This document shows positions 1-6,462 of a DNA stretch of 6,462 nt, one piece after another (within the stretch, counting starts at the first letter, position 1; each line of letters opens with the position of its first letter). The position numbers and the translations under genes were made by a program. Source of the stretch: Octopus sinensis (lineage: Eukaryota); the NCBI RefSeq assembly GCF_006345805.1, contig NW_021829367.1, positions 1 through 6,462 on the forward strand. The letters run 5' to 3'. The notes beneath the pieces were generated by a model. That model saw only the letters and a list, made by a program, of their open reading frames with translations, was not told where the DNA came from and made no database searches.

Positions 1-297
1 CTTTTAAATATCCAAGAGATCACTAAAATCGCAAAAGTTTTCAGGTTATAAAATGTCAAAATATTGCATATGTGTACTTGAAAAACAACAAAAAATCTAG
101 TGATCTCTTAGCTAAATATAAGTTAAATGATTGATAAAAAGCTTATATTTATCAAAGAGATCACTAAATTCGCAAAAGTTTTCAGGTTAGAAAATATCAA
201 ATTATTGCATATGTGTACTTGAAAAACAACAAAAAATGTAGTGATCTCTTAGCTAAATATTAGTTCTCTGATTGATAAAATTCTTATATTTATCAAA

Positions 298-470
298 GAA
301 ATCACTAAATTCGCAAAAGTTTTCAGGTTAGAAGATGTCAAAATATTGCATATGTGTACGTGAATAACAACAAAAAATTTAGTGATCTGTTAGCTAAGTA
401 ACAACAAAAAATTTAGTGAACTCTTAGCTAAATATGTTAACTGATTGATAAAATTCTTATATTTAACAAA
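298..470. repeat. 173-bp variant monomer with 34-bp internal tandem segment
   Basis: 365-398 taacaacaaaaaatttagtgatctgttagctaag is followed by 399-432 taacaacaaaaaatttagtgaactcttagctaaa, then a 2-bp deletion (tatgttaa). Length is 141+34-2=173. Confidence 0.93.
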
Positions 471-745
471 GTAATCACTACATCGCTGTTTTCAGGTTTA
501 GAAATATCAAAATATTGCATATGTGTACTTGAAAAACACGAAAAATTTAGTGATCTCTTAGCTAAATATAAGTTAAATGATTGATAAAAAGCTTTTATTT
601 ATCCAAGAGATCACTAAAATCTCAAAAGTTTTCAGGTTAGAAAATGTGAAAATATTGCATATGTGTACTTGAAAAACAACAAAAAATTTAGTGAACTCTT
701 AGCTAAATATGTTAACTGATTCATAAAATTCTTATATTTATCAAA

Positions 746-2031
746 GAAATCACTAAATTCGCAAAAGTTTTCAGATTAGAAGATGTCAAAATATTGCATA
801 TGTGTACTTGAATAACAACAAAAAATTTAGTGATCTCTTAGCTAAATATAAGTTAACTGATTGATAATAAGCTTATATTTATCAAAGAGCTCACTAAGAT
901 CTCAAAAGTTTTCAGGTTGGAAAATGTCAAAATATTGCATATGTGTACTTGAAAAACAATAAAAAATTTAGTGATCTCTTAGCTAAATATAAGTTAAATG
1001 ATTGATAAAAAGCTTTTATTTATCCAAGAGATCACTAAAATCGCAAAAGTTTTCAGGTTAGAAAATGTCAAAATATTGCATATGTGTACTTGAAAAAGAA
1101 CAAAAAATTTAGTGATCTCTTAGCTAAATATAAGTTAAATGATTGATAAAAGCTTTTTTCTTTATCCAAGAGATCACTAAAATCTCAAAAGTTTTCAGGT
1201 TAGAAAATGTCAAAATATTGCATATGTGTACTTGAAAAACAACAAAAAATTTAGTGATCTCTTAGCTAAATATGTTAACTGATTCATAAAATTCTTATAT
1301 TTATCAAAGAAATCACTAAATTCGCAAAAGCTTTCAGGTTAGAAGATGTCAAAATATTGCATATGTGTACTTGACAAACAACAAAAAATTTAGTGATCTC
1401 TTAGCTAAATATAAGTTAAATGATTGATAAAATTCTAATACTTATCAAAGAAATCACTAAATTCGCAAAAGTTTTCAGGTTAGAAAATGTCAAAATATTG
1501 CATATGTGTACTTGAAAAACAACAAAAAATTTAGTGATCTCTTAGCTAAATATAAGTACACTGATTGATAAAAAGCTTATATCTATCCAAGAGATCACTA
1601 AAATCGCAAAAGTTTTCAGGTTAGAAAATGTCAAAATATTGCATATGTGTACTTCAAAATCAACAAAAAATTTAGTGATCTCTTAGCTAAATATAAGTTA
1701 ACTGATTGATAAAAAGCTTTTATTTATCCAAGAGATCACTAAATCGCAAAAGTTTTCAGTTAGAAAATGTCAAAATATTGCATATGTGTACTTGAAAAAC
1801 AACGAAAATTTAGTGATCTCTTAGCTAAATATAGTTAAATGATTGATAAAAAGCTTTTATTTATCCAAGAGATCACTAAGATCGCAAAAGTTTTCAGGTT
1901 AGAAAAGTCAAATTATTGCATATGTGACGTGAATACAACAAAAAATTTAGTGATCTGTTAGCTAATAACAACAAAATTTAGTGAACTCTTAGCTAAATAT
2001 GTCAACTGATTCATAAATTCTTATATTATCC
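746..2031. repeat. Higher-order repeat copy 1 (9 monomers: A,B,C,D,E/F fusion,G,H,I,J)
   Basis: Diagnostic variants occur in the same order as in copies 2 and 3: A cagattagaagat/gaataac (746); B ggttgg (887); C aaagaac (1028); D short tatgttaa/ttcat (1170); E agctttc/gacaaac (1309); G gtacact/atctatcc (1450); H cttcaaaatc (1591); I caacgaaa (1732); J with 34-bp extra segment (1869). Confidence 0.9.
1869..2031. repeat. 173-bp-type variant monomer (J), noisy copy of 163 bp
   Basis: Same duplicated segment at about 1934-1997 (gatctgttagc then gaactcttagc), with many single-base dropouts. Confidence 0.85.
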
Positions 2032-3457
2032 GAAATCACTAAATTCGCAAAAGTTTTCAGATTAGAAGATGTCAAAATATTGCATATGTGTACTTGAATA
2101 ACAACAAAAAATTTAGTGATCTCTTAGCTAAATATAAGTTAACTGATTGATAATAAGCTTATATTTATCAAAGAGATCACTAAAATCTCAAAAGTTTTCA
2201 GGTTGGAAAATGTCAAAATATTGCATATGTGTACTTGAAAAACAATAAAAAATTTAGTGATCTCTTAGCTAAATATAAGTTAAATGATTGATAAAAAGCT
2301 TTTATTTATCCAAGAGATCACTAAAATCGCAAAAGTTTTCAGGTTAGAAAATGTCAAAATATTGCATATGTGTACTTGAAAAAGAACAAAAAATTTAGTG
2401 ATCTCTTAGCTAAATATAAGTTAAATGATTGATAAAAAGCTTTTCTTTATCCAAGAGATCACTAAAATCTGAAAAGTTTTCAGGTTATAAAATGTCAAAA
2501 TATTGCATATGTGTACTTGAAAAACAACAAAAAATTTAGTGATCTCTTAGCTAAATATGTTAACTGATTCATAAAATTCTTATATTTATCAAAGAAATCA
2601 CTAAATTCGCAAAAGCTTTCAGGTTAGAAGATGTCAAAATATTGCATATGTGTACTTGACAAACAACAAAAAATTTAGTGATCTCTTAGCTAAATATAAG
2701 TTAACCGATTGATAATAAGCTTATATTTATCCAAGAGATCACTAAAATCTCAAAAGTTTTCAGGTTAGAAAATGTCAAAATATTGCATATGTGTACTTGA
2801 AAACAACAAAAATTTAGTGATCTGTAGCTAAATATAAGTTAACTGATTGATAATTCTTATACTTATCAAAGAAATCACTAAATTCGCAAAAGTTTTCAGT
2901 TAGAAAATGTCAAATATTGCATATGTGTACTTGAAAAACAACAAAAAATTAGTGATCTCTTAGCTAAATATAAGTACACTGATTGATAAAAAGCTTTATC
3001 TATCCAAGAGATCACTAAATCGCAAAAGTTTTCAGGTTTAAAATGTCAAAATATTGCATATGTGTACTTCAAAATCAACAAAAAATTTAGTGATCTCTTA
3101 GCTAAATATAAGTTAACTGATTGATAAAAAGCTTATTTTATCCAAGAGATCACTAATTCGCAAATTTTTCAGGTTAGAAAATGTCAAAATATTGCATATG
3201 TGTACTTGAAAAACAACGAAAAATTTAGTGATCTCTTAGCTAAATATAAGTTAAATGATTGATAAAAAGCTTTTATTTATCCAAGAGCTCACTAAGATCG
3301 CAAAAGTTTTCAGGTTAGAAAATGTCAAATTATTGCATATGTGTACGTGAATAACAACAAAAAATTTAGTGATCTGTTAGCTAAATAACAACAAAAAATT
3401 TAGTGAACTCTTAGCTAAATATGTCAACTGATTCATAAAATTCTTATATTTATCAAA
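2032..3457. repeat. Higher-order repeat copy 2 (10 monomers A-J; about 1440 bp expected, 1426 bp here owing to scattered 1-bp deletions)
   Basis: A 2032, B 2173, C 2314, D 2455, E 2594, F 2735, G 2871, H 3008, I 3146, J 3285. Monomer A is identical by eye at 746, 2032 and 3458. Confidence 0.92.
3285..3457. repeat. 173-bp variant monomer (J)
   Basis: 34-bp segments at 3352-3385 and 3386-3419. Confidence 0.95.
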
Positions 3458-4893
3458 GAAATCACTAAATTCGCAAAAGTTTTCAGATTAGAAGATGTCA
3501 AAATATTGCATATGTGTACTTGAATAACAACAAAAAATTTAGTGATCTCTTAGCTAAATATAAGTTAACTGATTGATAATAAGCTTATATTTATCAAAGA
3601 GATCACTAAAATCTCAAAAGTTTTCAGGTTGGAAAATGTCAAAATATTGCATATGTGTACTTGAAAAACAACAAAAAATTTAGTGATCTCTTAGCTAAAT
3701 AATAGTTAAATGATTGATAAAAAGCTTTTATTTATCCAAGAGATCACTAAAATCGCAAAAGTTTTCAGGTTAGAAAATGTCAAAATATTGCATATGTGTA
3801 CTTGAAAAACAACAGGAAATTTAGTGATCTCTTAGCTAAATATAAGTTAAATGATTGATAAAAAGCTTTTATTTATCCAAGAGATCACTAAAATCGCAAA
3901 AGTTTTCAGGTTATAAAATGTCAAAATATTGCATATGTGTACTTGAAACACAACAAAAAATTTAGTGATCTCTTAGCTAAATTGTAACTGATTGATAAAA
4001 TTCTTATATTTATCAAGAATCACTAAATTCGCAAAAGCTTTCAGGTTAGAAGATGTCAAAATATTGCATATGTGTACTTGACAAACAACAAAAAATTTAG
4101 TGATCTCTTAGCTAAATATATGTTAACCGATTGATAATAAGCTTATATTTATCCAAGAGATCACTAAAATCTCAAAAGTTTTCAGGTTAGAAAATGTCAA
4201 AATATTGCATATGTGTACTTGAAAAACAACAAAAAATTTAGTGATCTGTAAGCTAAATATAAGTTAACTGATTGATAAAATTCTTATACTTATCAAAGAA
4301 ATCACTAAATTCGCAAAAGTTTTCAGGTTAGAAAATGTCAAAATATTGCATATGTGTACTTGAAAAACAACAAAAAATTTAGTGATCTCTTAGCTAAATA
4401 TAAGTACACTGATTGATAAAAAGCTTATATCTATCCAAGAGATCACTAAAATCGCAAAAGTTTTCAGGTTAGAAAATGTCAAAATATTGCATATGTGTAC
4501 TTCAAAATCAACAAAAAATTTAGTGATCTCTGAGCTAAATATAAGTTAACTGATTGATAAAAAGCTTATATTTATCCAAGAGATCACTAAAGTCGCAAAA
4601 GTTTTTAGGTTAGAAAATGTCAAAATATTGCATATGTGTACTTGATAAACAACGAAAAATTTAGTGATCTCTTAGCTAAATATAAGTTAAATGATTGATA
4701 AAAAGCTTTTATTTATCCAAGAGCTCACTAAGATCGCAAAAGTTTTCAGGTTAGAAAATGTCAAATTATTGCATATGTGTACGTGAATAACAACAAAAAA
4801 TTTAGTGATCTGTTAGCTAAATAACAACAAAAAATTTAGTGAACTCTTAGCTAAATATGTTAACTGATTGATAAAATTCTTATATTTAACAAA
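3458..4893. repeat. Higher-order repeat copy 3 (10 monomers A-J, 1436 bp)
   Basis: A 3458, B 3599, C 3740, D 3881, E 4017, F 4157, G 4298, H 4439, I 4580, J 4721. G at 4298 is identical by eye to G at 1450. Confidence 0.92.
4721..4893. repeat. 173-bp variant monomer (J)
   Basis: 34-bp segments at 4788-4821 and 4822-4855. Confidence 0.95.
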
Positions 4894-5253
4894 GTAATCA
4901 CTACATTCGCAAAAGTTTTCAGGTTAGAAAATATCAAAATATTGCATATGTGTACTTGAAAAACAACGAAAAATTTAGTGATCTGTTAGCTAAATATAAG
5001 TTAACTGATTGATAAAAAGCTTTTATTTATCCAAGAGATCACTGAAATCGCAAAAGTTTTCAGGTTATAAAATGTCAAAATATTGCATATGTGTACTTGA
5101 AAAAGAACAAAAAATTTAGTGATCTCTTAGCTAAATATAAGTTAAATGATTGATAAAAAGCTTATATCTATCCAAGAGATCACTAAAATCGCAAAAGTTT
5201 TCAGGTTAGAAAATGTCAAAATATTGCATATGTGTACTTCAAAATCAACAAAA

Positions 5254-5330
5254 AATTTAGTGATCTCTTAGCTAAATATAAGTTAACTGATTGATAAAAA
5301 GCTTATATTTATCCAAGAGATCACTAAATT
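5254..5330. repeat. 29-bp inverted repeat with 19-bp loop (potential hairpin/cruciform); one occurs per monomer, this is the best-matched example
   Basis: Left arm 5254-5282 is aatttagtgatctcttagctaaatataag. Right arm 5302-5330 is cttatatttatccaagagatcactaaatt, whose reverse complement aatttagtgatctcttggataaatataag matches the left arm at 27/29, including a perfect outer 16 bp. Confidence 0.95.
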
Positions 5331-5457
5331 CGCAAAAGTTTTCAGGTTAGAAAATGTCAAAATATTGCATATGTGTACTTGAAAAACAACAAAAAATTTA
5401 GTGATCTCTTAGCTAAATATAAGTTAAATGATTGATAAAAAGCTTTTATTTATCCAA
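5317..5457. repeat. Representative near-consensus 141-bp monomer
   Basis: Differs from the consensus only at pos 13 (aaattcgc instead of aaaatcgc). The next copy (5458-5598) differs only at pos 4 (gagctc). Confidence 0.95.
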
Positions 5458-6462
5458 GAGCTCACTAAAATCGCAAAAGTTTTCAGGTTAGAAAATGTCA
5501 AAATATTGCATATGTGTACTTGAAAAACAACAAAAAATTTAGTGATCTCTTAGCTAAATATAAGTTAAATGATTGATAAAAAGCTTTTATTTATCCAAGA
5601 GATCACTAAAATCGCAAAAGTTTTCAGGATAGAAACTGTCAAAATATTGCATATGTGTACTTGAAAACAACAAAAAATTTAGTGATCTCTTAGCTAAATA
5701 TAAGTTAACTAATTGATAAAAAGCTTATATTTATCCAAGAGATCACTAAATTCGCAAAAGTTTTCAGGTTAGAAAATGTCAAAATATTGCATATGTGTAC
5801 TTCAAAAACAACAAAAAATTTAGTGATCTGTTAGCTAAATATAAGTTAACTGATTGATAAAAAGCTTTTATTTATCCAAGAGATCACTGAAATCGCAAAT
5901 GTTTTCAGGTTAGAAAATGTCAAAATATTGCATATGTGTACTTGAAAAACAACAAAAAATTTAGTGAACTCTTAGCTAAATATGTTAACTGATTGATAAA
6001 ATTCTTATATTTAACAAAGTAATCACTACATTCGCAAAAGTTTTCAGGTTAGAAAATATCAAAATATTGCATATGTGTACTTGAAAAACAACAAAAAATT
6101 TAGTGATCTGTTAGCTAAATATAAGTTAACTGATTGATAAAAAGCTTTTATTTATCCCAGAGATCACTGAAATCGCAAAAGTTTTCAGGTTATAAAATGT
6201 CAAAATATTGCATATGTGTACTTGAAAAGACAAAAATTTAGTGATCTCTTAGCTAAATATAAGTTAATGATTGATAAAAAGCTTTTATTATCCAGAGATC
6301 ACTAAAATCTCAAAAGTTTTCAGGTTAGAAAATGTGAAATATTGCATATGTGTACTTGAAAAACACAAAAAATTTAGTGAACTCTTGCTAAATATGTTAA
6401 CTAATTACATAAAATCTTATATTTATCAAAGAAATCACTAAATTCGCAAAAGCTTTCAGGTT

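Follow-up and report, generated by a model that had tools for sequence, protein, structure and literature searches.

Organization of the satellite array

The window analysed, the whole 6,462-nucleotide stretch of Octopus sinensis DNA, is composed of a satellite array alone. The array extends head-to-tail and unbroken over positions 1-6462 (+ strand), with a unit of ~141 bp, 45 full monomers and a G+C content of 25% (A+T 75%). Tandem Repeats Finder (TRF) assigns a period of 141 to the entire interval 1-6462, with 89-91% matches. The anchor 11-mer TTGCATATGTG is found 45 times on the + strand of the whole window, at a spacing of 134-173 bp, and never on the - strand. The 45 monomers are thus in a single orientation, and the 6.5 kb hold no inversions, orientation switches or macro-dyads. 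The monomer consensus, phased from the same 11-mer, reads TTGCATATGTGTACTTGAAAAACAACAAAAAATTTAGTGATCTCTTAGCTAAATATAAGTTAACTGATTGATAAAAAGCTTATATTTATCCAAGAGATCACTAAAATCGCAAAAGTTTTCAGGTTAGAAAATGTCAAAATA. The + strand of the window is asymmetric in composition (2718 A against 2102 T) and each monomer carries several A4-A6 tracts. Phasing of A-tracts was rejected as too weak a signal (AA/TT power at 10.85 bp, P = 0.03, uncorrected for 12 harmonics). Coding potential was likewise dismissed: the longest ORF has 56 amino acids and all ORFs are artefacts of the repeat phase. A protein homology search returned no homologues of the commonest ORF, and three ORFs gave no exact-protein match.

Monomers are grouped in a higher-order repeat. 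One copy spans 1916-3332 (+ strand) and consists of 10 monomers, one of them with a 34-bp duplication; the next copy, of 1436 bp, spans 3333-4768 (+ strand). They share 96.8% identity, compared with ~88% between neighbouring monomers. In monomer comparisons the mean identity at lag 10 is 0.92, whereas other lags give 0.88-0.90. The remainder of the array is less regular: the first block (346-1915) has 11 monomers, part of them matching at lag 9, and the last block (4769-6207) is 92-93% identical to the two central copies. Head-to-tail monomers of constant length and a higher-order periodicity, as seen here, are features of satellite DNA. The higher-order repeat indicates that block amplification of the array is recent.

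The 34-bp tandem duplication lies inside one monomer per higher-order repeat, at 3350-3421 (+ strand, TRF period 34), and further ones were detected by TRF on the + strand at 365-431, 1937-1996 (here with period 31) and 4786-4857. They comprise 2.0-2.1 copies with 90-94% matches. The duplicated sequence is AACAACAAAAAATTTAGTGA[T/A]CT[G/C]TTAGCTAAAT and its two halves differ at the GATCTG / GAACTC positions.

Single-base deletions are clustered at 1639-2079, 2783-3191, 3929-4063 and 6208-6341. A total of 59 bases are deleted relative to the consensus, with hardly any insertions, and 37% of the deletions fall in homopolymers of at least 3 nt (32% expected). These clusters could be real or could reflect a locally low consensus quality in a long-read assembly; they lower the apparent pairing of the copies that they affect.

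The inverted repeat of the monomer

The focal copy of the inverted repeat has its left arm AATTTAGTGATCTCTTAGCTAAATATAAG at 5254-5282 and its right arm CTTATATTTATCCAAGAGATCACTAAATT at 5302-5330, which are complementary at 27 of 29 positions across the 19-nt spacer TTAACTGATTGATAAAAAG (5283-5301). The left arm belongs to the conserved half of the monomer, the spacer lies within a variable domain, and the right arm occupies its most variable domain. Each monomer is ordered as left arm (29 nt), 19 nt, right arm (29 nt) and 64 nt, so that the arms alternate in polarity along the array. The arms account for 58 of the 141 nt of the monomer, or 77 nt with the loop. In a monomer with the 34-bp duplication there are two left arms to a single right arm.

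The preliminary description, whose monomer numbering (position 1 at 5176) is self-consistent, had attributed this inverted repeat to every monomer and considered it to be beyond chance. Both claims were borne out. The inverted repeat is present in 45/45 monomers with a graded quality of 19-27 matches out of 29 (mean 23.7). Only two copies, the focal one and that at 5676-5752, reach 27/29, the highest value; the latter has a predicted DNA folding energy of -17.8 kcal/mol (z -7.9). The copy at 4833-4907 is decayed to 20/29 and folds no better than its shuffles (DNA -4.1 kcal/mol, z -0.1). The null for the dyad was built from 2000 dinucleotide-preserving shuffles of the consensus monomer in which the best ungapped dyad was scored. 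The consensus itself scores 19 (25/27 paired), against a mean of 7.2 (sd 1.1) and a maximum of 14 in the shuffles.

The core of each arm holds a GATC within a near-palindrome (AGTGATCTCT, AGAGATCACT), for instance at 5262-5267 and 5317-5322. The commonest arm variants lose it: GAACTC in the left arm, and GAAATC, GAGCTC and GTAATC in the right arm. At least two linked haplotypes of the loop and right arm are present, GCTT[A/T]TATTTATCCAAGAGATCACTAAAAT and TTCTTATATTTATCAAAGAAATCACTAAATT. A HindIII site (AAGCTT) at the boundary between loop and right arm is found in one haplotype only.

Folding of single strands and competing registers

Comparison with shuffled controls, which the preliminary description had proposed, gave for 5254-5330 a DNA fold of -17.8 kcal/mol (z -7.5), with 0/200 shuffles as good. 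The RNA fold of the same segment is -29.6 kcal/mol on the + strand (z -8.9) and -31.1 kcal/mol on the - strand (z -9.3), again with 0/200 shuffles as good. When each copy was compared with its own shuffles as DNA, z was below -2 in 41/45 and below -3 in 31/45. The fold is lost (z above -1) in the four copies at 410-484, 1975-2045, 4833-4907 and 5958-6032, all of the 'TTCTTATATTTAACAAAGTAATC' type or bearing deletions. These predictions support the view that a long, imperfect hairpin can form in each monomer from either strand, whether as single-stranded DNA or as RNA.

The arms have more than one partner. Each right arm complements the left arm of the following monomer just as well, across the 64 nt that separate them (5395-5423 for the focal right arm), and the resulting outer hairpin (5302-5423) is predicted at -22.1 kcal/mol, against -17.8 kcal/mol for the inner one. 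For the 64-nt spacer on its own, the predicted fold is no more stable than those of its shuffles (z -0.6). A trimer folded as DNA or RNA combines inner and outer pairings with longer-range ones, and its minimum-energy fold has a frequency of ~0 in the ensemble; as RNA the trimer reaches -104.8 kcal/mol (z -8.3). The array had been pictured as a chain of potential hairpins recurring every 141 bp. A hairpin is indeed possible in each monomer, but since the outer pairing is as good and the multi-monomer folds are mixed, the regular chain of hairpins at 141-bp intervals is just one state among several that compete.

Sequence diversity and maintenance of pairing

The 45 hairpin units were aligned over the 29-pair stem, giving 35 distinct rows, and compared with a null in which the 3' partners were shuffled among sequences. 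Compensation is not detected in this alignment: 84.7% of the cells are standard pairs, against 84.6 +/- 0.2% after partner shuffling, and the covariation score of the stem is 0.015, against 0.014 in shuffles. Double-sided changes amount to one in 985 cells, a figure matched or exceeded in 223/500 shuffles. Departure from pairing occurs through broken cells alone in 17/29 pairs. With the arm variants GAACTC, GATCTG, GAAATC and GAGCTC, pairs are lost and the opposite arm does not restore them, as the preliminary description had already remarked. Two mismatches, A.C and C.T (columns 17/62 and 19/60), are shared by all copies in all 35 distinct rows, and the imperfect dyad was for this reason already present in the founder unit, before amplification of the array.

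Nucleotide diversity (pi) is unequally distributed. It is 0.037 in the left arm (5th percentile of 29-nt windows), 0.126 in the loop, 0.128 in the right arm (89th percentile) and 0.068 in the rest of the monomer. The variable domain corresponds to consensus positions 60-110, that is to the loop and right arm (pi 0.127), while the conserved remainder is at ~0.056; the dyad straddles both. The preliminary description had suggested a functional role, to be abandoned if substitution rates in the arms were no lower than in the rest of the monomer. This is what is seen in the array, where both arms together have a pi of 0.082 and the whole monomer 0.082.

Within the array there is thus no support for a maintained structure, in a pairing test of low power given 45 monomers from one array, many of them mutual higher-order copies, and few variable sites per arm.

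A probably inherited and decaying dyad

The reading that we favour, with moderate confidence, is that the dyad was inherited from a founder unit and copied together with the array and its higher-order amplification, that its pairing is not maintained and that its effects are confined to single-stranded states. The founder unit already carried the imperfect dyad with both mismatches. The dyad may go back to an inverted duplication that arose locally, or to a small DNA transposon whose two terminal inverted repeats became the arms. From the founder it would then have reached every monomer through unequal exchange and amplification of the higher-order repeat, and its presence throughout the array would be due to this shared descent and copying. 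Within the array the dyad appears to decay like neutral sequence, as suggested by the uncompensated broken pairs and by the division of the arms between a conserved and a variable half of the monomer. A physical effect is expected only where the DNA is single-stranded (lagging-strand templates, repair intermediates) or in transcripts, if there are any. Hairpins are physically plausible under such conditions, where arms of opposite polarity can pair in rival registers, with the inner 19-nt loop, with the outer 64-nt loop or at longer range.

Several points weigh against neutrality. Few parts of the monomer are as conserved as the left arm. The similarity between arms, 86-93%, is close to that between monomers, and could result from maintenance or from arm-to-arm conversion instead of youth. 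Selection could also operate on the proportion of copies in an array that can fold, and not on each pair. Finally, all copies have the core TAGTGA / TCACT unchanged in both arms, which would fit paired half-sites for a protein as well.

The arms as possible transposon ends

The arms may stem from a MITE or foldback element, a small non-autonomous DNA transposon that was tandemised, and represent its terminal inverted repeats. The original unit would be either the inner 77 bp or the outer 122 bp (right arm, 64 nt, left arm). We regard this origin as possible but doubtful. The dyad would be a relic of the ends recognised by a transposase; such a reading concerns origin and is compatible with neutral decay. 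The 29-nt arms have a length typical of terminal inverted repeats, a feature that does not by itself define membership. The arm core TAGTG fits the end pattern of hAT-type elements, (T/C)A(A/G)NG, and this is used as a lead only. Satellites derived from MITEs, terminal inverted repeats and foldback elements are documented, among them Xstir, miDNA4, Tetris and Helitron-associated arrays (PMC12628747).

Against a transposon origin, a target-site duplication is not evident at either unit. The 8-mers flanking the inner unit, AAAAAATT and AAATTCGC, are not a direct repeat, nor are the flanks AAAAG and TTAAC of the outer unit; the AATT found at both ends of the inner unit is palindromic and so is uninformative on target-site duplication. 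Neither the 19-nt nor the 64-nt junction would be produced by a double insertion. A relative for comparison is also missing from metagenome, prokaryote, viral, plasmid and phage sequences: a 24-mer with 37 occurrences in the window had no match in metagenome, prokaryote-genome or viral contigs, nor had a gapped pattern of three boxes, and the trimer had no blastn match among plasmids and phages.

Cruciform extrusion and a proposed centromeric role

The proposal that the arms extrude as cruciforms was examined by comparing costs and available energy. Conversion of the 77-bp duplex into two hairpins would cost 43-71 kcal/mol (mean 57) by a nearest-neighbour estimate with no junction penalty. Unwinding of 77 bp would release ~50-56 kcal/mol at an unconstrained sigma of -0.06 and ~20-28 kcal/mol at -0.03, in domains of at least 5 kb. 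By this arithmetic, crude in that it uses DNA nearest-neighbour parameters for 1 M salt without a term for the four-way junction, extrusion from the duplex is marginal: a handful of the best copies are borderline at plasmid-like supercoiling and the others are not. From what is known of cruciform kinetics, extrusion should be rare in nucleosomal DNA when it has to proceed through two mismatches and a 19-bp spacer. Spontaneous extrusion from the chromatinised duplex appears unlikely.

The same costs bear on the idea that the dyad is a selected non-B-DNA signal, whose cruciforms or hairpins in centromeric chromatin would help to recruit the machinery that loads CENP-A/CENH3. The dyad symmetry is well above the composition-matched expectation, the monomers are of nucleosome scale and organised in a higher-order repeat, and no CENP-B-box core is present, the motif TTCGNNNNANNCGGG having no match in the window within 2 mismatches. 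A model of this kind is published (PMC5889037, PMC13081366); it was built on dyads shorter than 10 bp in CENP-A-bound satellites, and not on dyads of 29 bp (PMC5889037, Kasinathan & Henikoff 2018). The array satellite resembles those centromeric satellites in being A+T-rich and tandem, with dyad symmetry above expectation, stable predicted single-strand folds and likewise no CENP-B-box core. It differs from them in its 29-nt arms and 19-nt spacer, with no detectable selection on pairing. The lack of compensatory changes and the equality of arm diversity with the monomer average argue against a selected signal, as do the loss of the fold in 4/45 copies and its weakness in about a third. The 19-nt spacer and the two fixed mismatches would make extrusion costly, and the centromeric location is itself an assumption. 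Such a signal is rated improbable.

Proposed small RNAs and protein-binding sites

Transcripts of the array, if folded into imperfect stems of ~27 bp or paired between monomers, could be diced to small RNAs that direct heterochromatin on the array. The RNA hairpins average -20 kcal/mol and go to -31 kcal/mol, on either strand; the stability of the RNA trimer and a weak likeness to the miRNA precursor model mir-982 (29.9 bits) point in the same direction. The Rfam matches, however, are far under the gathering score of 70 and reflect hairpin shape alone, the stem is not preserved by covariation, and bidirectional transcription of any satellite yields dsRNA without a dyad. This pathway, predicted from folds, appears very improbable. 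Membership of a structured RNA family was rejected, mir-982 being the best Rfam match and sub-threshold; no hammerhead or other Rfam family was found in the window at E <= 1.

The arms could also be paired half-sites of a dimeric sequence-specific DNA-binding protein, in which case the symmetry would come from the protein and not from strand folding. Across the loop, the cores TAGTGA and TCACTA are separated by 62 bp; across the spacer, the distance is 79 bp. Their invariance and the GATC-centred near-palindromes of both arm cores are consistent with half-sites, which would account for sequence conservation without compensation. Joint invariance of paired arm positions is, however, unexceptional: 23% of the alternative registers have as many jointly invariant pairs, and symmetric conservation of the arm cores was for this reason rejected as evidence of paired binding sites. 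As 40% of the columns are invariant, runs of 5-6 nt are expected (P(max run >= 6) = 0.27). The right arm is also highly variable outside its core, and the most conserved block of the monomer is found outside the dyad. Paired half-sites seem highly doubtful.

That block is the 14-nt TATTGCATATGTGT, found in all monomers without variation (for example at 5222-5235, + strand). It is the longest invariant run in the alignment, with P(run >= 12) = 0.0008 when invariant sites are permuted, and it contains a CATATG palindrome. As a possible protein-binding box, TATTGCATATGTGT is a stronger candidate than the dyad. It starts at the opposite symmetry axis of the monomer. That the 29-nt dyad and this box together form a genetically specified centromere module, in which hairpins or cruciforms and a box-binding protein would place CENH3 nucleosomes on a 141-bp register, is a very remote prospect.

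Relation to known satellites and significance

A satellite with dyad symmetry inside its monomer, as found here, is an already known type. Searches of the literature for 141-bp satellites returned only unrelated items, namely a spacer repeat of tomato rDNA, a maximum size quoted for fern satellites and a k-mer setting, and none of the exact 17-19-mers of the array was found in the full text of papers.

Satellites of the Palorus subdepressus type reportedly consist of two inversely oriented subunits of ~72 bp. They are said to share with the present array a monomer of ~141-144 bp with internal dyad symmetry. The halves of the octopus monomer differ from this description in that their similarity in inverted orientation is not significant outside the 29-nt arms (P about 0.09). 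An origin of the whole monomer as an ancient inverted dimer of ~70 bp is not supported by this figure, nor by the fold of the 64-nt spacer (z -0.6).

Inverted repeats and palindromes are frequent in satellite monomers (PMC12628747), while long intra-monomer dyads are 'not so common' (PMC13081366). Among the latter are the 385-bp satellite of Trichogramma brassicae, with 80-bp inverted repeats, the 1061-bp satellite of Tribolium brevicornis, with inverted segments of ~470 bp, and TmSat2 of Tribolium madens, with inverted segments of ~300 bp; function is unproven in all three (PMC13081366). Compared by description, they too have an imperfect inverted repeat over a large share of the monomer, multiplied together with it. 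Monomer and arms are much shorter in the present array, which also has no orientation switches or macro-dyads. Xstir and miDNA4 of Xenopus and Tetris of Drosophila virilis share with it a short tandem unit whose arms have the length of terminal inverted repeats, a resemblance only; those families are derived from MITEs or foldback elements (PMC12628747), whereas the target-site duplication is not evident here.

If the dyad were functional, a 29-nt stem in each 141-bp unit would offer a far cleaner experimental system than the dyads below 10 bp of the non-B-DNA model, easy to mutate, to footprint and to trace through the copies of the higher-order repeat. The centromere module, if true, would provide an unusually clear and experimentally tractable case of centromere specification by non-B DNA. 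Under the preferred reading of an inherited dyad, the value of the array is mainly descriptive, as an A+T-rich satellite with conserved and variable domains, a 10-monomer higher-order repeat and a long intra-monomer dyad. A dyad that behaves as inherited sequence would be a caution against inferring the function of satellite dyads from their presence alone.
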